This document shows positions 12,028 to 27,584 of a stretch of 53,122 nt of DNA, piece by piece (the first letter of the stretch is position 1; the number at the start of each line of letters is the position of its first letter). This DNA comes from Parasitella parasitica NRRL 2501 (Eukaryota > Fungi > Mucoromycota), in contig MU619407.1 of NCBI GenBank assembly GCA_025201805.1, positions 1 through 53,122 on the forward strand. The letters run 5' to 3'. Position numbers and translations under genes: made by a program. The notes under the pieces were generated by a model. That model saw only the letters and a list, made by a program, of their open reading frames with translations, was not told the DNA's origin and made no database searches.

Positions 12028-12853
12028 TGGTGTGTAGGAAAGCTCATCTTGCTAGGAAACATATAAATATATATATACCTTATTATAAACAGTAGTTTTT
12101 TCATCGAACGTAGCATGAAGATCTTTTGGTTGGCGCCATTCATGTCGTTAAACAGAGGTCTATAAATATAGCGAGATATTCTTTTTCTTATCCTCTTATT
12201 GCAATAAAGAGTATGTCCTGAACTTTGAGTTGGATATGACAATAGTACTAAAAAATTTTACTGCATGTATGTGAAGGAGCGTAAGGCACTCGGCATTGAA
12301 TCTGCATTATTTTTCAGATTTTGGGGCGAATTAAACAAGCCTGCTAATTCTTACCAAGCTTTGCATTCTTACAAACTCTTCACGGGTCATTACCATCTAC
12401 CACCTCTCCAATTCATCAAATTTGTTTGCAGATTTTATTGGAATTAAATTAGCCTATACCTTTATTTTCTCTCACTTTGTTGTCTGTTTTAAGGTTGTTT
12501 TTGGGATGAAAAAGCCAAGAATCAATATTTCTTAATGTTTAATGAGGGTTTGGGATGGTTCAAAATGCTACTTTAATTTTCTGAATTTGAAGACTTGATA
12601 TGCTTGAAACAAGACCCTTCTGATTAAACATTCTGGCAATGCTGTGTGTGCATTCTCCAGAGTGTCTTGTTTTGCAATCTTTTTCAGTTCTTTTTGAAAG
12701 CTTTTAAACAGTACTTGAATAGTTAATCCGGAAAGGAAAGTCTATAGACAAGTAATTTATATTCTTTAATGATCGTGACAAGATTGACTCATTTTTATAT
12801 ACATTTTGTGTTTTATTCATATATCTATATGTATACTGTTTAAGCTTTGCGTT

Positions 12854-15132
12854 TTACACTTTACGCTTCAGCATACAATAATCACCCCATTCCAAACCAG
12901 GAGAGTCAGGAATCCAAAAGGCTCTTAATAAACGGTTAGAGTTCTCAGAATCCAAGAATGGGTAACAATCCATCACCTCCCAATGCTCAGTATCTTTAAT
13001 GTAGCGAGGTTCTAGAGGAGAGGAGGGACGAAGGGGAAAATCAACATCGACCAAATAATCGCACTCCTCTGGACTGACATAAACGCTTGGATTTTCCTTG
13101 TTTAAATCATTGAAACCCTCAGGTGCTTGACGAGCACCAAACCAGCCATAAACACGACGCCTATAATATTGTTCTTGTCCGTCTACTTCATATGTGCCTA
13201 CATCCAAATCCTCCTCAAACTCTTGTGGCAATTGTCCTTGGAAGTTTGTTTTAAGAAACTGAAGACGAGTGTCACTTGGCAAAAAGAACTGCGACGGGAA
13301 ACGATACCATTCTTTGCCGACACACACGTTTTTCAGCTTGAGGTCTACATTGTTGGGGAAATCCTCCTGAATGTAGTTGCGGTTGACGAGCTGATCAGGT
13401 GCCTGCTCCTTCCAAAGCGAGGTGTACACCTGAAAAGGCGCGCGGTAACGAGTAAGAAGTGCAGTAATGCGGGAAATAGACAAAACGCCATAAACAAACA
13501 GAATGGCCAGCGATGTGTAGCGCAGGACAATGACACGAGTGTTGACACCGGCACCCAATAAGCCAGCAAAACGACTGGCCCACGTACGAATCAGAAAAAT
13601 CGAAATAGCGGCATTCAATGCGACCAAAGGGTAAGCGACATACATGAAGCGTTCTTCCTTGTGAGCCTGCAAAGAAAATACAATGAACCAAAGATAAAAA
13701 GGAATCAACTTCAAGCCAAGCTGAATGTAAGGCCAAACGTGATCCATTCTCGTAGTGCCGGGAACACGGTTACGATCGATGAATGCTGCAATGAGCTAAC
13801 TTTACAATTAATACCGCAATCACCATTCCCCAGTATTACCAGACTTACGACGCAAACAGCAGAGCCCAATGCCAAAATAAACGCAATATTGAAATTCAAG
13901 ATACCGTTCATGATGTAGTAGTACCAAGGTTCGACGCCATACAATTCTGGTCCACGTCCTTCAGCATTCGACAATACATTATATTTTATGATATTCCAAG
14001 CAACAATGGTGTACTTGCGATAAAACATTTGGTCTATCAACATAAGAATAAACGACAAACCAGCACCACAAATGGCAGTAGCTTCGATCAAACGAATGAT
14101 GCGTCTTAGGCGCCATTTTTTCCCAGCAACAGAGCGAACAACCGTGCCATCTTCTTTTGTCATAGTGTCGCGGCCAAAGATAAGCACCTCTTCAATGGCA
14201 AAAGGAACGCCAATAAGGGCAGCAAATGGCCAACCTCCCAGAGCGCCCAACCCAATCCAAAATACAACCTTATAAGTACGGCTCAGGTCAACATCGGATA
14301 CAGGCCTCAAAGCATAAGAAAATGCCATAAATGCACAGTACATGGCAAAAGTCGAAGGCAAATATGCTAGTATTGCAGAGTTCAATATACGTTTAGCCCA
14401 CCCATACCGCACAGACCCCCTCCCACCTTACCAGTAGAGGCATTGAACATGCCAGCTCCAAAAAACAAAATAGCAAATACATAGCGGCCCACATGAGGGT
14501 TGATTTCTTCAGTGACAGTACGATAAAATCTAGCTTCTACAAAGGAACACACGGCAGCAAGGAAAAGTCGGATAAGGTAAAACGTTTGAAGCTACAGTCA
14601 GTTGGTTAGCTCTATCACGACAAGGCATGCACATAAATATTACGAGCGATTTCAATTTTACCTTGGTAGAAGTTAACAATTTAGTAAAAAAGCCTACAAC
14701 AGCATTGACAAAGATAAAGGCCCAGCTTCTAATCTTGTAATCTGTCGAGTATTCCCAAGTTTCACGGCCATAACCTTGTAATAAATAGTGCGTAGGTTCC
14801 CAGTAGTTGTACACTTCATCACAATCATCAATTATGCGATACAATCCTGAGAAACAGCGCATAATAAATAAAATTCGAAAAGCAGACAAAATCGTCAGCG
14901 AAAATGCATCTTGCTCGCTCATTAAGGCTTGAGCAGCTCTACAAATAATATAACAAAAAAAACCCGCTTGTTACAAACAACAGCTTTTTTTTTCATGAAA
15001 AAAAAAAACTTACTTGACAGACTTGAGATCGGAAGCATTGGAAGGATTAGGAGCACTGGAATCGGTAGCATGTGGTTGTTTTTTGCTTTTCTTATTATTT
15101 GTTGTACGTGAACGCAATTCAGAAGACGCCAT
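12854..15132 (-). CDS. ALG9: Dol-P-Man alpha-1,2-mannosyltransferase (GT22), 5 exons
   Basis: DCDEVYNYWEPTHYL..ETWEYS..IRSW, AYLPSTFAMY, GWPFA, QAHKEERFMY, VCVGKEWYRFPSQFFLP; ATG 15132. Confidence 0.94.
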
Positions 15133-16578
15133 TTTTAACAATAAAAAAAAAAGGGTGAAAAAAAAAGAGAAAGAAAGCCTTGGAATAGGAAGGTTAACCA
15201 CGTTTTAGCATCGATCTCCTTTTATTTTGTTTCGCCTTCTGAATACCCCAAATGTGTTTATCGCTAAAAGATATAACCGCCCATGCTATCGTATTTTCTC
15301 CCGAGAACTGAAACTCTTTTTGTGATTCCATGCGACTTGCACTCCTTCTCGCTTTCCACGTTTTGTTTACTCCTTTCATTCTCTTTTATCGCCAAACCAA
15401 TCATGATAGATCAATTAACAAACTAATATAATGTATAATGGTATGGTTCCTACTGAAGTATTTATAAAATCAATAGCATTCGACGAGTAAATTGAAGATG
15501 GCTGCTGCTCGCACTGAAAATTAAGATATGTACAAAAGTATATGCAATCATTTAAGTCAGGTTTGAAATTCTCAATATACTAAAACAGTGTACTGCACCT
15601 ATGTATTATGCCAGACAGTTTTTCAGCGTTTCTTGCTTTGGTATATATCGTACAGCACTTTGATGTGCTGGCTTTTATTGTTGTGCATGGACTATTTGAA
15701 AACTCAATTTTTGAAGGACGCTGATCGCTTCTTTTAAACATTTCACGTCTTTTGGAGGCAACTCAATTGCACCTAGGGGCGACTAATAGCAGATGTTTAC
15801 TCTTTATATTTTTAATCGTAAATATATGCTGTATATTATCCTTGTATCTAAGAAAACAAAGGCTTTTTACTTCATATTCTAGATGTATCTGCGCGAGACA
15901 TCAAGGCCATTCTATCTTTTACTCCTTCTACCTCGTTATCTTAATTCTAATTGAATCAATTTTGGAAATTATAGCAATTGATCAGGCCTATCACTAAATG
16001 AAAGATTTTAAGGAACATTAATGATAGCAAAACTACAAAAGTATACAGGCTGAGTGTATATCAACTCTAGTCCATGACACACCATCAACTAAATGATTTA
16101 CAAGAAGATAATCCCATTTTTGGGAATTTCATCTACTAAAACTGTATTTTCTGATTTGAATTGGTTGCTATGAAAACCTTTTCATTGAAAAAATGAGGTT
16201 GCCAGGGGCAAGCAAAAAATGGCAGATCAGTTCTTTTTTTTTATTATTATTATTACTATTATTTGTTTTATCGGTTACTTTTATGGGACAAGATGAAGTG
16301 CAAAAAAAAAAGAGTGGTCTTTATCCAAAAAGGTGAATATGGCAACACATCTTGTATTAAAGGGGAATGAAAATTGTGAGGTATCACTAAAAACTTCGTA
16401 ACGTCATACACCATAATCTGTTGTGCTGGGTGGGTTAAAGGGGGACTACAGAGGACTACAAGATCCAAGGCAATAAGCAGCTTTACTTCACACTGGGTTA
16501 TTTCACGTGTTTTGCAATTATATTAATTATCCTTTTACACATACTTTTATTTTTTGCTCTCTTCTTTCTCTTTCTCCC

Positions 16579-16620
16579 TTTTTACTTTTTACTTTTTACT
16601 TTTTACTTTTTACTTTTTAC
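16579..16620. repeat. (TTTTTAC)6 tandem repeat in the Rac1 5' region
   Basis: Six exact 7-bp units ending 34 bp before the ATG. Confidence 0.9.
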
Positions 16621-16654
16621 TTTTTTTCTTTTTCCTTTTGATACTTTTCATAAT

Positions 16655-17429
<775 letters not shown>

Positions 17430-17457
17430 GTAAACCGTGAAAACCAAGGAAACAAAA

Positions 17458-17657
17458 NNNNNNNNNNNNNNNNNNNNNNNNNNNNNNNNNNNNNNNNNNN
17501 NNNNNNNNNNNNNNNNNNNNNNNNNNNNNNNNNNNNNNNNNNNNNNNNNNNNNNNNNNNNNNNNNNNNNNNNNNNNNNNNNNNNNNNNNNNNNNNNNNNN
17601 NNNNNNNNNNNNNNNNNNNNNNNNNNNNNNNNNNNNNNNNNNNNNNNNNNNNNNNNN
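17458..17657. other. Assembly gap (200 N)
   Basis: Run of n. Confidence 1.
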
Positions 17658-18735
17658 TTTTTATTAATACAATGATATATGATATAAATGTATAAATTCG
17701 TTAGTGTGTGTAATGTTGAATGAACTCCGTCAAATAGGTCTGTAAATTGCCATGGATAAATCCAGTAGATCAAGGAGGTTTTAAACAAGGCAAAACAAGC
17801 ACACTTCAAGCAGGAGCGACATCTCGTGTTCCCCTAGAAATACAAAGAAACTATATGGCCACCTGTTGAAATATGGGCGATATTTTAGTAAAATGCAGGT
17901 CTATCATTATACTTGTAAAATGAGCGAAATGAACGTCATCTCACGTTTAATGAACAAAAAGTCGCTCACCCAATTGACAATAAGTGATATTCTGACACAA
18001 ATGATAGTATGTAAGGGATCAGAAACTACTCCGTTCTATTAGGTCACATTTGTGAGGTGATTAACTACCTCATAATAAATAACCTTTAATCACTACCAAA
18101 GCATACATAATTAATCATCATCATGAAACCATGATCCCCTTTCTAGAACCCTGAATTTCTCAAAAGGGGTTTCTTTTATGCATAAACATCATGAAATTGA
18201 TGATAGTATAATTTATATAGCTTCACTCTTATAATGACAAGGCTTTCAACTCGTTAAATGTGCTGATAAAATACCAAAACCTTTTACAAAATAGTTTTTC
18301 GAGATATTAGATAAAATTATAGCAAAAACGTTTTTAAAAGAAAGCATAATTTTAGCTTCAAGCATATTTGTTATTAGTGTATCAAGTGAAGTTTGCAAAT
18401 ATACTCCTAAGCAATGCATCTTTGAATCCGAATTAATACAATAACAAACGTACATTTATCGTAACGGACGTAAGAAGATCATGACTCTTCTGCTATTCGA
18501 TCGATAAATTTACATTGTTGCTCATATAACAAACATATTCACTACCTATATCATAAAGCCGTGTTGAATGTTTCTGAAAATTGACAAGGGCCATGAGTTT
18601 TTACGTTGAGAATGACTTTTTAAACGAGTGTAATTTATATTGGGTGATAAATTGAAAAAACAAAATTACTCTTTGAAAAAGAAATAATGATGATACAGGC
18701 AATGATACAACGAAACGGAGATAATAGTACACTGG

Positions 18736-21700
18736 TTAAACGTAAATTGTGCTTGGAATGTCTCTAATCTTCAAAGGAAAAGGGTCGGCTTCTTCGTCTT
18801 CATCAGCCATAGGGTCGACTCCGTATAAAGTCTTTGGGTATTCATCGTCGTCGTCATCGTCACCAAAGACTTCCTTACCATCGACAAACTCTGGCTCTGG
18901 CTCAGCATAGACGGGAGGATCTGTAGGGCTATCTATATCTTCTTCATAGTCATCGTCATTGTCATCGTACTCATCCTCGCTCTCATCGTCGTCCTCATTC
19001 ATATGGACTTCACCGTGTACATTTCCAGGAGCAATACGATACCCATTATCATCAGCATAAATAATACCATCCTCGGGCTCAAGTTTAAGGTGCTGCTCAG
19101 CTGGAAAAGGTGGCTCCACAACAGGAGCATCAAAATCGCCAGCTCTATTCAATCTCACTCTATGCAAACCACCCACGTCGTGACGAGCACAATTCAAATC
19201 CCAAGAGTCTAGCAAGGTAGCTTTTTCACATGCAGCAACACTCCAAGGCTCGCCGTAGGTAATGGGAGCATAGATACGGTAGGCATAAATGATGGAAGCA
19301 CTTGCAGCCACTGCAAACATAATCTTCGCCGCACAGTGAAACCTGCTTAAAATCAAGTCAAGGCCAACGCCCAAGGTCAACACGGCCAAGTAGAGAGCAG
19401 GCATGTAATAATTCAAAAATAACTGAGAGTCCATATAGTAAAATGGAATGTAATGCAATGCCCAACCTAAGGCAAAAAAGCCAGCCGAGGTTTCATAGTA
19501 GGCACGCTTCCCATTAAAATTGTCCCTGAAGCCACGCTGATCACGCAGCCGGAAAAAGGTAAACATAATGCCGAATGCAAGTACTGCGACTGTGGAAGCC
19601 CAAAAGACAGCAGGGTTTCCAAGCAGGATGATCTGAGCGGTTTCCGAGACCCAATAATTGACACCAGAGAGAAGTAAGGGCCATACATGTGGACGAGTCT
19701 GGAAAGGATATGTCTCAGTCAAGTCAACATTGAACGACCACATGGCATGGTGCAGACGCATCAGTTTGGATATAAACCCAGGTCTGTGTTCATGTTCGAT
19801 AGCTACACCGGGAGGCAAAAGCGGGTTCTCGGTCTCATCAATGATCCACAAAACTTTGGCCTTTAAGCCCTCTTGGATACAAGAGACTTCCTGCTGTCCA
19901 TAGCCCCATTCAGGCAATCTCTCGAAAGACGAATATAAATGGCAGTCTTGGTTGGGGTGCTCAAGGCGGAAAATACTACGCCGAGCCTCCAAGTATCTGC
20001 CAGCGTCCGGATGAGCAGTGTTGTTGTCGATTTGAACACGCCAAAAGTCATTGGAGTCACCAGTATAGTTCTCAAAGCCATAGCCACTGACCTCAAAATG
20101 GTAGTCAGTATCAGTGACAGGCGCAGGCACGTTATGGCTATGAAGTTTGCGTGGAGCAGAGGCAACATGTTCAAGGCGGATGATATCTCCATGACGGATG
20201 AATTCCAAAAATGTGGTGTTGTCGCTACCCAAAAGATCAGGCGTATTCTTCTTGTCTACATCCGCCTTGAGGATTCTCCACCAGTTATTCTCGTCTTTGT
20301 ACGGATACAAAGTAACCTGCTGTTGTCCAGATCCTTCGACATAGTTTGCTGCATGAGAATGAAGATAACCGCCGGTAGTTTCAAGGTGGCGCATGGTTAT
20401 GAGAGAGCCGTAGGCTACTGGAACTGGTGTATCCACAGGATCGATTCCTTTCAGCTCATTTTGTGTTTCGATCTCCATGTAATTGTCGCCAGGACCTGAC
20501 TCGGAGAGAAGGGAAAGGTGAGCGTAGAACGTAGCCAAATAGATGACAATAGGTATGATGCAAAGACATGTCAATCTCGCACAAAGATGGACGCAATACT
20601 GACGCTACAGAATTCAAAAAAAAAAAAAAGGAATTTCTATATTTAAACATGTTGTGCATCCTAAGTTTGGAAAGATAAAGTTTAGCCAGTACCTTTGTCA
20701 CTTTGATATCACCAAGAATCTCCCACAATTGCTTTGATGCAGACAAGCCAATGGTAGTAATAGTGAATAAACCAACCCATTTACTACTGAGAGCACAGCC
20801 TAAACTGACGCCTGTGAGGAGTAACCAAACCCACCAGCTCCGCCCAAAAGCACTGGTATTACATTTGTCAGAAAAAATGCCAATGATTTTCTCCACCCAC
20901 ACACTGACCTCTGTCTGTAGAACGTTGTATAAGCATAGACACTCGATGCAGTAAAGAAGAGAAGGTATGAGTCCAGTAAAATAAGTCGATCGCTAGTAAT
21001 AAATCCATTTTCTATAAATTGCACAATTAATTTGACAATAAATTAAAGGTGCTTGTTGATTTGTACTACCAAAACAAATTGCCAAGGCAGTAATAGCGGC
21101 AGCGAATATTGAATGTCCAGCATTGCGAATAGTCAAATAAGCCAAAGGCACCACTAAACAGCCTAATAATGCACCAAACCCACGAACTGTAGCGTATGGA
21201 AAAGCGGAGGGGTACTCACTGCTGACAGTTTATGCCGGTTGGTTGGTTGGTTGGTTGGTTGATATACACTCGTAAACAAATACCTTCCAGACTCCTTGAA
21301 TTCGAATTGACCATCATAGCCTGCAATCCAAGCAACCAAAGCAATCAACATTTTTGCCAGCTACACACATGCAATGCAGCAATCAGAACCCCCGCCCTCC
21401 GTCACCCACTTTTATAACAACTTACCGGTGGCTGGACGTCAAAGAAGAACCTCTGGGTGATGTAGTATGAAGCATCTTGGCCAAAAAGAACCTCGTTAAA
21501 GCTATAGAGATTGCATGTCAAAAGCCACCGTTCACTATACTGAAAACAAAAACTTACACGACTTGATCTGGATTACTGATATTCTTGAATCGAACGGGCA
21601 GCGAGACAACAAACAAAACTGCAGCAAACAAACAATCTTTACTGCTATGATAGTTTGGGTTTCTAATGTGGAGCGGCTTTTGCTTTTTCAGGTCATCGTT

Positions 21701-21784
21701 CTGTTGCTCTTTTTTGGGGTGGTGAAAAACAGTGGGAGAAGCGAAAAGCTTTCGTTGTCTCGGCTTCAAAGAGGCAATAGACAT
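18736..21784 (-). CDS. Protein O-mannosyltransferase family member (PMT1-like, GT39 + MIR domains) with substituted active-site motifs and acidic C-terminal tail; 7 exons
   Basis: SNPDQVVFNEVLFG, FFFDVQPPLAKMLIA, RLILLDS, SSKWVGLFT, MIR repeats GGYLHSH..QQQVTLY, RKLHSH, LPEWGYGQQEV, LGNPAVFW, LFLNYYMPALY. Confidence 0.9.
21237..21261. repeat. (GGTT)6 microsatellite in a PMT intron
   Basis: Direct reading. Confidence 0.9.
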
Positions 21785-21913
21785 TTTTTTTTAATGTTTG
21801 GGAAAACGAAAGAAAAGAGTAACATGTGTGGCAAGGCAGTGCCAGAAATTTATTACAGAATCTAAGTTACGTTACATTACATAATCAACTCCCGATAGCG
21901 GGACACATTTCAT

Positions 21914-23578
21914 TCAGGCAAGAGATGCCTTCATAGTCTCCAATAAAATGTCAGCATGTTGACGCTGGAAAGTCAACATGGGGCGAAGACGTACAGTGCG
22001 ATCACCACAACCGCCAATGTTAACACCGCGCTGACGCATGTCGATGAGGAACGAATCTCGTTGCTTGGGGTCAGGTAAATCAAACGCAATAAAGGCACCT
22101 TGGCCACGAATATTCTCGATGGGCGTGGACTTTGTCATTTCAGTCAAGTTGTCCTGCAAGTAGCTTCCAACGTCCTGCACATTTTGAAGCAACTGCTTGT
22201 CTTTAATCTCTTGCACAATAGCAGCTGCTTGCATTGCACGAACTGGGTCACCCATCCAGGTGTTGTACAGACGATAGGCGTGTGTGGGTCGAAGACGAGA
22301 GCTCAGATAGAATCCGGCTGCTTGAAACTTCTTGGAAAACGTTACCATGTCGGGCGGTGAAGGCAATTGCCATGCTTCATGGGCCCAGAATGTGCCAGTT
22401 GCACCTACACCTGTTTGGACTTCGTCGACAATAAACAAAACGTCATTTTTTTGACAGATGGCTTGCAAGCCTCTGAAAAATTCAGGGGAGGCTACGAATC
22501 AAATCGAGTGAGCATATAATGTGCTCGATCATCGTATCAATAAACGTACCGTGATTGTCTCCGCCCTCGGATTGAATGGGCTCAATGACTAAACCGGCGA
22601 CCGGCTTCTTTGCTGTTGTAATAATACGCTCGACTTGATCCAATGCTGCTTGCTCAATCTTTTGATTGTGTTCTTTGTTGTCTTGCAAAGGATAGGCGAG
22701 CTGAGGGAACGGCGCTTTAGGCCAGTCAAATGCGGGAATATCTACTTTGTGGATTGCTTTGCTGGCGGTTGCTGTCAAGGAGCCAAACAGTCGACCGTGG
22801 AATGCTTGACTAAAACTCAAAATGGACATATCGTCAGGCGAGCCGGGCGTCTGGTTCTTCATGCATGAATTCAGCTCTTCCAGATTGAAATCGCGATCGC
22901 CACGTCTTTTGGCAGCCTTGTACATGAATGCGGTCTTGAATGCATTCTCGTTTGCACAAGAGCCGCACATGACAGTAAAGACGTTTGTCATGCCCTTGGG
23001 TGCCACTGCCATGAACGCCTTTTCAACCGAATCGACCCAATCTACGTTGGGATTTACGCCGAGAGCAGCTCTACATGTACATACGGACGTTGAATGAACG
23101 CAATCTGATACATCTCATCCAGCCATACCTGTTTGCCAATGCAGTCTGAAAAGCAGGCTTTTGCGCAAGTGCCAAGAAGGCAGGGTTGTTGTAGCCTACA
23201 GGAATGGATGCAATCTGAGCAAAAACATCCAGCAATGTGTTGCCGTCGGCATCCACAATGTAGTTTCCCTTTGATTTGGCAAAGTCTATGACACAGGTAG
23301 CGTTAAGCGCGCGATCTGCATACTTAGGATTATTCACATGCCGTACCTGCAACAAAAAAGATGGATCGGGTGTCCTGATATTGGTCTAGTTTTGACATGA
23401 TCTTTTTGGATTCAGGGCCTGGAATGGCCGTGACAACGTGAGGTTTGGTAGGCTCATCGGGAAAGAAAGCCGTGGCCTCTCTGATAGGCGAGGCGACACT
23501 AGCTAAATAGCGGACGCGAGGCACTGCATTGGGCCATCGACTTATCGTCGCATTTCTGCGTATAATACAAGGAATCAT
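21914..23578 (-). CDS. UGA1: 4-aminobutyrate aminotransferase (GABA-T), likely mitochondrial, 4 exons
   Basis: SKGNYIVDADGN.LLDVFAQIASIPVGYNNP, CGSCANENAFK, FHGRLFGSL, HKVDIPAFDWP, IEPIQSEGGDNH, DEVQTG, VTFSKK (PLP lysine); Arg-rich, acid-free N-terminus. Confidence 0.95.
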
Positions 23579-24860
23579 AGTTGTTCAGAGTGGGGAAGAG
23601 GGTTAAGCAAAATCTAAATTTTTAAAAAGAAAAAAGCCGTGAATATAAATAGGCAATGCTTTGCGTGGGAATTTACTCCTTGTACTGTAGTGGTATTTGT
23701 CATGACGAGATAAATACATGGACCGTATATGGTTATTTGAGCAAAGATTTTGTTTATTGCAAGTGATTGGTATGAGACATCTTCAAGAATCCCATTTTGT
23801 GTACCGATGCATGTATCCACAAGCGGGCAGACAGGCACCATACCCACTTTTCAAGATATTTTAGCATCATGGCCATTACTGCCATTATTCTTTACAGCCC
23901 GTGCACAAGGTCTTGTTTTCAAAGTAGTGATGCGTTTTATTCGCTTGCGTAGTAGTGCATGTCTGGTGTTAACTTTCAAAGCAGTGAAACTTGTACACCA
24001 AAGGGCAATGCAAATTGCGTACATACAGCGGAAAGTAATGCAATTTTTATTTTATAAACGAAGAGAAGGCATGCAATAAGACATGCTTATATGTATAAAT
24101 CAACTTGGCCACACATGGCGATGATTTTTGAAACATATTTGCAGGTCAGGGTGATGGTGGGGGTAGGCGCTGGCTCTGTGCTTGTACTGGTGAGCTTGAT
24201 AAATTCCATAGTAGGTAGCTATAGGTGTTTTCGTTTTTGGCTTGGAGACATTGTAAAACTTGTTGGCGGAATTGTTCCATACTGTAGAAATATAAGAGTA
24301 AAGGCGGATTGAGTCAAATGCAGTAAAAGACATGTTGATGTTGGTATCAAAATGATTGTATACGGAGTCCAACCAAGTTGGTCGGTTTACTACAAACAGC
24401 TTGATTTGACAGTTGTTAATGATGAAGGATTTGAGAGACAGGGGCTGCTTAAGAGTAGGCTCCGATGGGAATAATGGGATTGTCAACGCCAGTAGACCTA
24501 GGTTTGGTTGAGCCAAATGGCACGTTATTCATGGTGTCTTTTGTATGAAGAAGTTTGGGTTGATCGGTTTGCAGAAAACTTGGACATGAGGACCCACCTG
24601 GTTGTTGCACGATTTCTTGGTCACCGATAATGAAAACATCCACACCGTCATAGAAATGGCAAAGAAGATGACCCGTATATTTGGGATAATAACACACACA
24701 TTTATAAAGGTTTCACATTGTCAAAAACTCTAAAACTAGTCCGTCATATTGTTGTAATAATGCAAGGGCTTTTTTGGCGAGTTTATTATCGTGTACGCAT
24801 TTTAGATTTCGTTTTTTTTTTCTTCTTCTTCATCTTCTTTACATACATCTCTTATAAATC

Positions 24861-27547
24861 ATGTCCATTGACACATCCAAACTAAGTGAGCTGTTCCACT
24901 ACAAGGAGAACGATGCCCAATTGAAAGGGAAAATCATCAATGTTGTCAACCAAATCCCTTACAACTGCTTTATGCAAAACCAACAAGACAACCATGCATC
25001 AGTTCTCGCCAAGTTGAATTTGAACAGCCACAATTCAGACCTGCTCGACGCCACGCCTATTTCGCATCTGGAAAGAAGAAGACGCTCTACTGTCGTAGCT
25101 CTTGGCCAAACCAACATTTGGCAGCTAGCGACTAGAAGAGGCCATTCGGCCATGTACGCTGCTCTTGATTCGTTGAAAAAAGACTACCCAACCCTTTACA
25201 TTGGTGGCACAGGCACTGTCCTGACTTATCAAGACAAGCAGGCTGTGGATTCCGCTTCTATTACCGACAGCGACAAGGAATCACTCAAGCATTTGCTCAG
25301 GACGAAGCATGACATGGTCCCAATTTTCATTGATGATAAATTATCTTTTGGTCATTATGAAGGCTACAGCAAGCAAGGTAGGTGATACTACGACAGCGAA
25401 TGTCTCGCCTGTGGTCTAATTGTTTCTTCTTGCCTACAGTTCTTTGGCCATTGATGCACTATTTAATGTGGTCAGACAGTGTGGATGAAGTATCATTTTG
25501 GGACGACTACGTTCGAGTAAACCATATATTTGCAAACGAAGCCATTGCCAACTACCAAGAGGGCGATATCAGTAGGTTGAGGCGTTGGACGAGCAAGGGC
25601 GTGTTTACTGACAAGTGATTTATAGTTTGGGTCCACGATTACCATTTGATGCTCGTACCACAGATAATCCGAGAGGCTTTACCGCATGCACCAGTTGGTC
25701 TGTTCATGCACACGCCGTTTCCCAGCTCCGAGATATTTAGATGTCTTCCACGTAAGATCCTTATGTAACAACATATTTGGTTGTAGCAGACACTTACACA
25801 AGCATGTACACTTATCCTAGATCGCAAAGAGGTTTTATTGGGTATTTTGGGCGCAAACGTCGTTGGATTTCAAACCTACAACTACGCCCGGCACTTTGCT
25901 TCCACTTGCACTCGCATTCTGGGCTTCGAGTACACGCCTTCTGGCATACTAGCTAACGGAATCCTGATTCAAATTGAAATCTACCCCATTGGCATTGATG
26001 TTGAAAGAACACGTTACCACTGTCACCGCCCGGGCGTTGCGCCCAAAACCAAAGCCATCCGCGAGCGCTACGCAGGTAAAAAGATTATTATTGGTCGTGA
26101 CAAGCTGGATCCTGTCAAGGGTGTGCTTCAAAAACTGGAAGCGTTTGAAACATTCTTGACAGACTTCCCCGAATGGCGTGAAAAGGTTGTGCTTATACAG
26201 GTGACATCCCCTGGTGTCTTGGGCGCAACCGAGCTTGAAAATAAGGCATCCGAGATTGTGGCCCGCATAAATTCAAAATTCGGCTCCCTTGAATTTACGC
26301 CTGCCAATCTCTTTAACCAGCACATTGATCGCGATGAGTACTATGCTTTGCTCGAAGTCGCTGATATTGGCTTGGTGACACCTATTATCGACGGCATGAA
26401 CACCGCCAGTTTCGAGTATGTTGTCGCACAAGAGCAACAGCATAGTCCATTGATTTTGTCAGAATTTGCCGGTACAGCCAATAGCATGGGTGCTGCAGTC
26501 ATTGTGAACCCTTGGGATTGCAAGGAAGTCGCTCGTGCTATTGAAGAATGCCTATCTATGAGCGAAGAGGAGAAGACGCTGAAATATCAACAGTTGCATA
26601 GGTTTGTTACGTCGCACACTGCGGCCTACTGGGCTAGGTCTTTACTGAACGGCTTGTTAAATAGCCCCAAGAATAATTGGGGCAATACAACGCCTTTGGA
26701 TGTGTCGAGAGTGCAAGCTGAATACAACGGCAGAAAAAAGAGAGCCTTTTTCTTTGACTATGACGGTACATTGGTTCCGATCTGCCAAAATCCTGAAGAT
26801 GCTAAGCCTAGTCAGCAAGTGATTGACATCTTGACCAAGCTTTGTAAAGATCCTGACAATGTCGTTTGGGTTGTTTCTGGTAGAAACAAGGTAAGAATAT
26901 CATGTGACTACATGACGTTTTGACGCATCTATTTATACGGCATGTCGTAGAATTTTTTGGAGAATTGGTTGGGTCATATTCCAAACTTAGGTCTTTCTAG
27001 CGAGCATGGATGCTTTATCAGAGACCCCAACAGCACTGTGTGGGTTAGTCTCATAGACAACTTCGACATGTCTTGGAAGGATGATGTGAAGGAAGTATTT
27101 GAATACTATACTGAACGAACCCCTGGTAGCTTTATTGAAGAAAAGGAATGCGCACTGACGTGGCATTACCGTAAAGCTGATCCTAAATATGGCGCTTTCC
27201 AAGCAAGAGAGTTGCAGAACCATTTGGAGCAGAACGTTGTTGGCAAACTGCCTGTGGAATGCTTGATAGGTAAAATGAACGTTGAGGTGAGGCCCAGCTT
27301 GGTCAACAAGGGTGTCATCATCAAACGTGCCATTACGCAAAACCCAGAGATTGAATTCATGTTTTGTGCCGGCGACGATCGTACGGATGAAGATATGTTC
27401 CGCATTTTGGAAAGAATGGATCTTGGGGGTATTCAAATGATTCAGTTCACTGTGATTGTGGGAAATGTCGATAGAAAAACGCTTGCAAATTGGAAACTTG
27501 ATTCCCATCAAGATTTACTTGAAATTTTACAAACACTGATTGAATAA
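24861..27547 (+). CDS. TPS2: Trehalose-6-phosphate phosphatase / TPS complex subunit (GT20-like + HAD), 5 exons
   Basis: WVHDYHLMLVP, FMHTPFPSSEIFRCLP, GRDKLD, DGMNT (Tps2-type), HAD motifs FFDYDGTL, VSGR, GDDRTDEDMF. Confidence 0.92.
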
Positions 27548-27584
27548 AATGGCTTCATAGTTAATACTATTATATCAGAGAGGG

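Follow-up and report, generated by a model that had tools for sequence, protein, structure and literature searches.

A PMT1-type protein O-mannosyltransferase gene of Parasitella parasitica with a replaced active site: a candidate pseudoenzyme under purifying selection

Protein O-mannosyltransferases (PMTs) of the PMT1 and PMT2 subfamilies function as heterodimers, and the PMTs studied to date are all obligate dimers (PMC12705809, PMC12586580). In S. cerevisiae Pmt4, D80 serves as the base in deprotonation of the acceptor, whose Thr lies between H83 and H563 (the double mutant H83A/H563A is inactive), and the phosphate of dolichyl phosphate (Dol-P) is coordinated by H101, K241, R659, H664 and H665 (PMC12586580); work on C. 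thermophilum Pmt4 assigns phosphate binding to H105, K244, R666 and H672 and calls the DE motif invariant (PMC12705809). When Pmt4 dimerizes, substrate for the pocket of either protomer is held by the MIR domain of its partner (PMC12586580), an arrangement in trans that has also been proposed for Pmt1-Pmt2. Here, we describe a PMT gene in a 53,122-nucleotide stretch of the Parasitella parasitica NRRL 2501 genome (GCA_025201805.1, contig MU619407.1, positions 1 to 53,122; hereafter the window). Its product, P0001, has replacements at seven of nine functional active-site positions in an otherwise conserved protein, and we somewhat favor the reading that it is a PMT1-type pseudoenzyme that no longer transfers mannose and is selected for a non-catalytic job, likeliest as the partner of a PMT2-type subunit.

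Three described systems bear closest comparison. The first is S. cerevisiae Pmt1 (PMT1 subfamily, GT39; chain A of the Pmt1-Pmt2 heterodimer structure 6p25), which has the same order of PMT, MIR and PMT_4TMC domains and shares with P0001 the R65, R140 and K236 equivalents, the MIR fingerprints and the hydrophobic scaffold. Where Pmt1 carries D77, E78, H80, H98 and R-QMFL-HH, however, P0001 carries N, E, L, Q and S/NY, plus a Tyr for the His of HP[YF], and it ends in an acidic extension of about 145 residues that Pmt1 lacks. The second is S. cerevisiae Pmt7, which one paper groups with the PMT1 subfamily (PMC3698189). Like P0001 it is a PMT-family member without demonstrated activity, a likeness drawn from its published description; while Pmt7 is an old, separate yeast paralog, P0001 looks like a recent, lineage-specific conversion of an ortholog that appears active elsewhere. 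The third is a pair of engineered proteins, Pmt1 E78A and POMT2 E86A, with which a dimer carrying one damaged DE motif can keep most of its activity (PMC5016187). This is the situation that we propose for P0001, except that those proteins each carry one point mutation made in the laboratory and P0001 arose naturally, with seven replacements in its active site.

Membership of P0001 in the PMT/GT39 family follows from homology along its whole length. Searches of the window, run exon by exon or with the database protein P0001, recovered the N-terminal PMT transmembrane (TM) domain PF02366 (exon-wise Pfam matches down to E=1.4e-14, and also assigned to P0001 in the database), a luminal MIR domain with its fingerprints, and a PF16192 region with a Pmt1-like fold. 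Matches to solved structures were best to Pmt1 (6p25_A, 2e-148), followed by Pmt2 (2e-122) and two structures of Pmt4 (5e-114 and 4e-101), and P0001 falls inside the fungal PMT1 clade of our tree, closer to Pmt1 than to Pmt2 or Pmt4, which places it in the PMT1 subfamily. An AlphaFold2 (AF2) model built on a 40-sequence alignment is confident at residues 50-740 and superposes best on 6p25_A, with a template modeling score (TM) of 0.83 over 704 columns at 37% identity, with disorder predicted for residues 1-42 and for the tail at 745-887. The model predicts that P0001 keeps the PMT fold, with the transmembrane helices of PMT and PMT_4TMC and a luminal MIR beta-trefoil.

To describe the active site we used nine functional positions taken from the Pmt4 structure papers (the catalytic base Asp, the Glu, the pair of His that clamp the acceptor and the five residues that bind the Dol-P phosphate), transferred to P0001 through HMMER alignments with solved PMTs. 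P0001 reads N78 E79 L81 Q99 K236 Y564 S658 N663 Y664 at these positions, with only E79 and K236 left unreplaced. Its motifs FNEVLFG, FFDVQPP and SQLFLNYYMPA stand against FDEVHFG, DVHPP and RQLFLHHY in almost all of 119 homologs, and the N78 codon is AAC against GAC or GAT in the four orthologs of the codon alignment. By sequence, P0001 has neither the DE motif, nor the acceptor His pair, nor the five basic phosphate ligands of a competent PMT, and it has probably lost mannosyltransferase activity. A first-pass annotation of the window, made from the letters alone, had already reported an intact open reading frame and intact splice sites in a gene that we confirm as 887 codons with all introns GT..AG, and its splicing and codon coordinates prove right (N-E-V-L at 21497-21486, Q99 at 21434-21432, D-S-Q-L-F-L-N-Y-Y at 19431-19405). 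The changes that it listed (D>N, H>L, H>Q, R>S and HH>NY) indeed lie in the catalytic, acceptor and donor-phosphate motifs, with roles here assigned from the Pmt4 structure papers; the list was incomplete, as H564Y (19710-19708) was not in it, and its statement that the DE motif is essential for catalysis has to be qualified, as Pmt1 E78A lowers Pmt1-Pmt2 activity only moderately (PMC5016187).

Since P0001 is a singleton in the protein database, we considered whether the pattern could be a sequencing, assembly or gene-model artefact, and found no support for this. The seven replacements amount to nine nucleotide changes in seven codons of exons 2 and 7, and their mixed types argue against a mutational artefact. 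The exon structure matches that of P0008, from a second Parasitella genome (GCA_000938895.1), and those of Mucor atramentarius and M. ambiguus intron for intron, and the first-pass annotation had independently arrived at the same splicing as the NCBI model. We regard an artefact as hardly credible. A bias of a single mutation type, such as one resembling repeat-induced point mutation, was also considered and is ruled out by the mixed types of the nine changes.

The damage is restricted to the active site. At these nine positions, 91 of 113 full-length PMT1-subfamily homologs read DEHHKHRHH throughout, and all non-gap deviations from this signature among the 113 lie within one Mucorales clade. 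We defined 126 near-invariant columns, with conservation of at least 97% across 94 reference proteins from outside the core-Mucorales clade, nine of them functional and 117 other. P0001 is changed at 7/9 functional columns as against 5/117 others (Fisher p=3.1e-7); four of these five non-functional changes are common to Mucor orthologs and are therefore older, and the remaining private changes of P0001 are mostly conservative (I/V, D/E, S/A, R/K). The first-pass annotation had also pointed to the Arg equivalents in VRF, VRG and SSKW as kept, and R65, R140 and K236 are indeed retained and invariant in alignment A1. Mutation of R142 in Pmt4, the equivalent of R140, gives an inactive enzyme. R138 of Pmt1, again the R140 equivalent, is reportedly needed for formation of the Pmt1-Pmt2 complex, a result that Girrbach and Strahl are said to have obtained in 2003; our literature search on Pmt1 Arg138 in complex formation returned nothing usable. 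P0001 thus combines the loss of residues required for catalysis (seven of nine) with a retained fold, as expected of a pseudoenzyme.

The first-pass annotation had taken P0001 for a separate paralog, which does not hold. The gene order Aminotran_3-PMT-Ras-GT22 is kept in GCA_000938895.1, which encodes P0008, and in Mucor atramentarius and M. lusitanicus, and partly in Blakeslea; M. ambiguus keeps Aminotran_3-PMT-Ras, with no GT22 in the stretch fetched. P0001, P0008, M. atramentarius and M. ambiguus agree in all six intron positions, and the M. lusitanicus gene model has an extra intron. Given this conserved gene order and these shared intron positions, P0001 is the positional ortholog of the Mucor genes and no separate paralog. 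In a maximum-likelihood (ML) tree, P0001 and P0008 are sisters (Shimodaira-Hasegawa-like approximate likelihood-ratio test, SH-aLRT, 99), the pair is sister to the Mucor proteins (100), and all lie within a 19-member core-Mucorales clade (100) with a long stem of 0.42. The Mucor proteins P0002-P0006 and P0008 share with P0001 the locus order, the intron positions, the acidic tail and 66-75% identity, and the five Mucor orthologs keep the whole active-site signature except for H663Q in four of them. P0008 was also tried as an in-genome paralog of P0001 and rejected: the genome of the window has no copy at that identity, and P0008 is syntenic in another assembly. The two assemblies named "Parasitella parasitica" are collinear over window positions 12852-27549 against L013 (GCA_000938895.1, LN732886.1) at a DNA identity of only 70-81%; on these sequences they do not appear to represent one species-level lineage, or one of them is mislabeled.

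Codon analyses used a coding sequence built from the window by exact match to P0001. Neighboring genes between the two Parasitella genomes show dS of 1.1-1.3, omega of about 0.05 and about 90% protein identity, a calibration resting on Aminotran_3 and trehalose-phosphate synthase (GT22 and Ras were left out owing to contamination by wrong-strand high-scoring segment pairs). Between P0001 and P0008, dN is 0.183, dS 1.05 and dN/dS 0.175; by region, dN/dS is 0.17 in the N-terminal TM part, 0.076 in MIR, 0.145 in the C-terminal TM part and 0.23 in the tail (pairwise range for the tail, 0.06-0.23), and Mucor pairs give 0.08-0.10 for the PMT gene. Three-point partitioning with Mucor outgroups assigns the P0001 branch a dN of about 0.06 and an omega of about 0.15, and the P0008 branch a dN of about 0.12. 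A purpose-written five-taxon ML model of the GY94 type gives an omega of 0.22 on the P0001 branch for all codons and of 0.19 for the TM domain, against a background of 0.12, and rejects omega=1 in both cases (2dlnL 16.9, p=4e-5, and 10.0, p=0.0015). The gene has therefore stayed intact and under purifying selection after the loss (omega 0.15-0.22, read with the caveat that synonymous sites are near saturation), as the first-pass annotation had supposed. That annotation had named two findings, taken together, as speaking against its own reading, namely canonical motifs in orthologs and relaxed selection on this copy; the former was found, and the latter only in mild form (omega 0.15-0.22 against 0.08-0.12).

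These data bear directly on the possibility of a young pseudogene, in which P0001 would be a redundant copy of PMT1 type whose function was lost recently and in which a stop codon or frameshift is yet to come. At least seven other PMT loci in the genome make redundancy plausible, the omega of P0001 is about twice that of Mucor orthologs, and the sister protein P0008 is more broadly eroded (14/117 invariant columns, with a polyQ run in place of its HPF..WP loop). Neutrality on the P0001 branch is nevertheless rejected, and 112/117 other invariant positions, the six introns and the tail motif are intact. Under whole-gene neutrality about 99 stop-creating mutations are expected per unit of neutral distance, and at d=0.1 the 887 codons stay open with P=3e-5 and at least seven of nine codons are changed with a probability of 4e-4; for seven of nine to be changed, the neutral distance must reach at least about 0.3, and the reading frame then stays open with P of about 1e-14. 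The joint neutral probability of at least 7/9 changes and no stop codon is at most 3.5e-8 at any duration. The nine sites were either free for most of the branch with the rest of the gene constrained, or were changed by selection; both exclude a young pseudogene, which we rate as very unlikely.

The exact set of seven changes is private to the genome of the window. A conserved clade defined by NE/VQPP/NYY, which the first-pass annotation had suggested looking for, was ruled out: the set is found in no other of the best 120 proteins, and the closest orthologs are canonical, the Mucor proteins keeping DE/HPP/R..[HQ]H. The two Parasitella lineages have instead damaged the active site in different ways. 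P0008 (L013:11262-13106 in GCA_000938895.1) keeps the loop-1 D, E and H and the DVHPP His; where the near-invariant luminal loop HPF..WP would lie it carries a CAG/polyQ run in frame, its counterpart of RQLFLHHY reads (H)RQQHDY, and 14/117 invariant columns are changed, at an omega of about 0.2 with neutrality rejected (p=3.5e-17). Further replacements are scattered through the clade: R658H and R658Q in the Cokeromyces and Benjaminiella orthologs, and loss of H663 in species of the M. circinelloides group and likewise in M. hiemalis (whose gene model is without loop 1). The orthologs of Choanephora (L017:3001-6020) and Blakeslea (L018:3001-6049) share the loss of both acceptor His (H81S/A, H564E) and have lost about 16-19 further family-invariant positions, and as a pair they show a dN/dS of 0.11 over a dS of 1.13. 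Judged from these sequences, they form an independent counterpart of P0001, older than it, in which purifying selection again accompanies erosion of the PMT active site. Such repeated erosion in sister lineages suggests a trend of this Mucorales clade and no accident. We raise only tentatively, and with some doubt, the extension that the whole core-Mucorales PMT1a clade (19 sampled proteins, set apart by the long stem and by a newly acquired, conserved luminal acidic tail) has moved into a role that does not need its own catalytic pocket, with repeated independent loss of the active site under purifying selection.

In contrast to the active site, the MIR domain of P0001 is intact, as the first-pass annotation had noted for its repeats. 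All 33 invariant MIR-region columns of alignment A1 (aa 301-545) are present, including G331 and H338 just upstream and W518 just downstream of the Pfam MIR span (aa 344-517). The fingerprints L346-H-S-H349, L419-H-S-H422 and D369-E-N-N372 are in place; sites alpha and beta for mannose/O-Man peptides are made up of LH(S/T)H and DxNN fingerprints (PMC7759382). The acidic tail is confined to the core-Mucorales PMT1a clade (P0001 and its orthologs P0002-P0016), in which the motif EPEPEF[VI]DGKEV[FY]GDD..E[YW]P[KR]T.YG.DP..P.P[LV]..[RK].IP.T is conserved from Rhizopus to Parasitella, and a Pfam search with the tail gave no match to any family at E<=10. In M. mucedo and R. microsporus the ortholog ends in HLDL and HIEL, respectively, which resemble endoplasmic reticulum (ER)-retrieval signals.

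A well-preserved MIR domain could also serve a role independent of any PMT dimer, for example as an ER-luminal lectin, chaperone or quality-control receptor, in which MIR would bind O-mannosylated or Ser/Thr-rich chains and the acidic tail would recruit a partner. Constraint within the gene is strongest in MIR (pairwise dN/dS 0.076), whose mannose-binding fingerprints are intact, the tail is conserved across core-Mucorales and dates to the long stem branch (0.42) that also saw the first changes at invariant positions of the family, and the HIEL/HLDL ends of some orthologs would suit such a receptor. The TM domain is constrained as well, however (omega 0.19, p=0.0015), and a MIR-only receptor would need it just as an anchor; R140, whose Pmt4 counterpart is required for activity and whose Pmt1 counterpart is reportedly required for complex formation, is invariant; and no studied PMT works outside an obligate dimer. 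We therefore think a dimer-independent role rather unlikely.

We return to the reading that P0001 is a non-catalytic PMT1-type subunit, to which the heterodimeric habit of PMT1 and PMT2 proteins, the function of MIR in trans, the mild effect of Pmt1 E78A and the presence of intact PMT2-type loci together lead. Elsewhere in the genome lie at least seven other loci of the PMT family (contigs C18, C32, C35, C50, C79, C138 and C147), by motif two PMT1-like, two PMT2-like and two PMT4-like, with that on C147 unclassified. The PMT2-like loci on C32 and C79 have WDE, AHFGK, DVHPP and R..HHY intact, and in at least five further loci the motifs are intact wherever they lie inside the fetched stretches. 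In the PMT2-like genes the DE codons are immediately followed by an intron. In P0001 the catalytic base is gone (D to N), together with the acceptor Ser/Thr clamp, both of whose His are replaced (H to L, H to Y), and with four of five positively charged ligands of the phosphate of dolichyl-phosphate mannose (Dol-P-Man; H to Q, R to S, H to N, H to Y). We propose that P0001 would pair as the PMT1-type subunit with an intact PMT2-type subunit of its own genome, supplying a dimer scaffold that stabilizes and positions the catalytic partner, and may contribute in trans its intact mannose/O-Man-peptide-binding MIR domain and its clade-specific luminal acidic tail. The first-pass annotation had likewise proposed a non-catalytic paralog acting as scaffold or regulatory partner, or as an ER receptor; the loss of the active site in an intact gene stands, a paralog with a clade of its own does not, and the loss of activity and the role itself we continue to infer.

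Several points weigh against this reading. The retained E79 and K236 make residual or altered chemistry possible. The exact variant set is confined to a single genome and may not have persisted through a speciation, and P0001 forms a singleton cluster in the protein database, without a transcript-derived copy. Synonymous sites are near saturation between the compared genomes, which makes branch-specific omega imprecise, and for MIR and the tail taken alone omega=1 is not rejected on the P0001 branch (p=0.47 and 0.09), in tests of low power because synonymous sites to the outgroup are saturated.

The first of these points leads to the alternative that P0001 is still an enzyme, a neofunctionalized transferase whose remodeled, uncharged pocket takes a different donor or acceptor. 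Consistent with this, the replacements are polar or aromatic (N, Q, S, N, L, Y, Y), loop lengths are kept with no change to Ala or Gly and no deletion, E79 and K236 remain, and seven changes of nine lie at the upper end of what site-specific neutrality predicts (4.4-5.6 expected for d=0.3-0.45), so that directional selection is possible. Yet the general base and every Arg and His around the donor phosphate are lost, leaving a lipid-phosphate sugar donor without an obvious site, and our literature searches gave no precedent. We consider a new transferase activity quite unlikely.

The coordinates of the gene, its domains and replaced residues, and its neighbors are collected in Table 1. The six introns, all GT..AG, are 56-88 nt long; intron 3 contains a (CAAC)6 microsatellite, as read on the minus strand, at window positions 21236-21259.

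Table 1. Positions in the window of the P0001 gene, its functional sites and the neighboring genes.
Feature	Position	Strand	Remarks
PMT1-subfamily gene	18736-21784	minus	7 exons, 887 codons + TAA; translation identical to NCBI protein P0001
P0001 exons	21784-21558, 21501-21426, 21360-21284, 21221-21070, 21011-20909, 20852-20693, 20604-18736	minus	exact protein-to-window mapping
Loop-1 DE-motif region, N78-E79-V80-L81	21486..21497	minus	Asp base replaced by Asn (AAC), acceptor His by Leu (CTT), Glu kept; scPmt4 D80/E81/H83
Q99 (CAG) in FFDVQPP	21432..21434	minus	in place of DVHPP His, Dol-P phosphate ligand (scPmt4 H101, ctPmt4 H105)
K236 (SSKW)	20780..20782	minus	sole Dol-P phosphate ligand of five still present (scPmt4 K241, ctPmt4 K244)
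MIR beta-trefoil domain	19849..20370 (aa 344-517)	minus	Pfam PF02815, E=1.8e-24
PMT_4TMC region, C-terminal 4 transmembrane helices	19201..19776 (aa 542-733)	minus	Pfam PF16192, E=6.9e-52
Y564 (TAT) in TYPFQTRPHVWP	19708..19710	minus	in place of HP[YF] His (scPmt4 H563), second acceptor-clamping His
S658-Q-L-F-L-N663-Y664	19408..19428	minus	in place of R-Q-L-F-L-H-H; 3 Dol-P phosphate ligands lost (scPmt4 R659, H664, H665)
Acidic C-terminal tail (aa 741-887)	18739..19179	minus	predicted disordered; conserved motif EPEPEFVDGKEVFGDD..EYPKTLYGVDP..PFPLKIRDIPSTIYV
GT22-family mannosyltransferase (ALG9/PIG-B-like, dolichol-linked)	12852-15279	minus	neighbor of PMT gene
Ras-family GTPase	16146-17410		neighbor of PMT gene
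Class-III aminotransferase (Aminotran_3)	21914-23740	minus	neighbor of PMT gene
Trehalose-phosphate synthase/phosphatase	24730-27549	plus	neighbor of PMT gene

Pseudoenzymes in general are common. Our literature searches on PMT pseudoenzymes and on PMTs in Mucorales returned nothing usable, and no PMT with a dismantled active site under selection is described in the literature searched, within which P0001 would be the first pseudoenzyme to be documented for the PMT family. The evidence for P0001 comes from a single lineage and is sequence-based. The non-catalytic contribution of a PMT protomer has so far been probed only by single point mutants, and P0001 would offer a naturally evolved protomer in which base, acceptor clamp and donor-phosphate cage are gone while scaffold, MIR sugar site and tail are kept by selection. 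If P0001 pairs with a PMT2-type subunit, it would be a ready-made separation-of-function allele for dimerization and for the contributions of MIR in trans. Should the shift of the whole core-Mucorales clade also prove true, these fungi would demonstrate, by an example from nature, that a PMT heterodimer can include a protomer acting as scaffold and lectin, and not as an enzyme.

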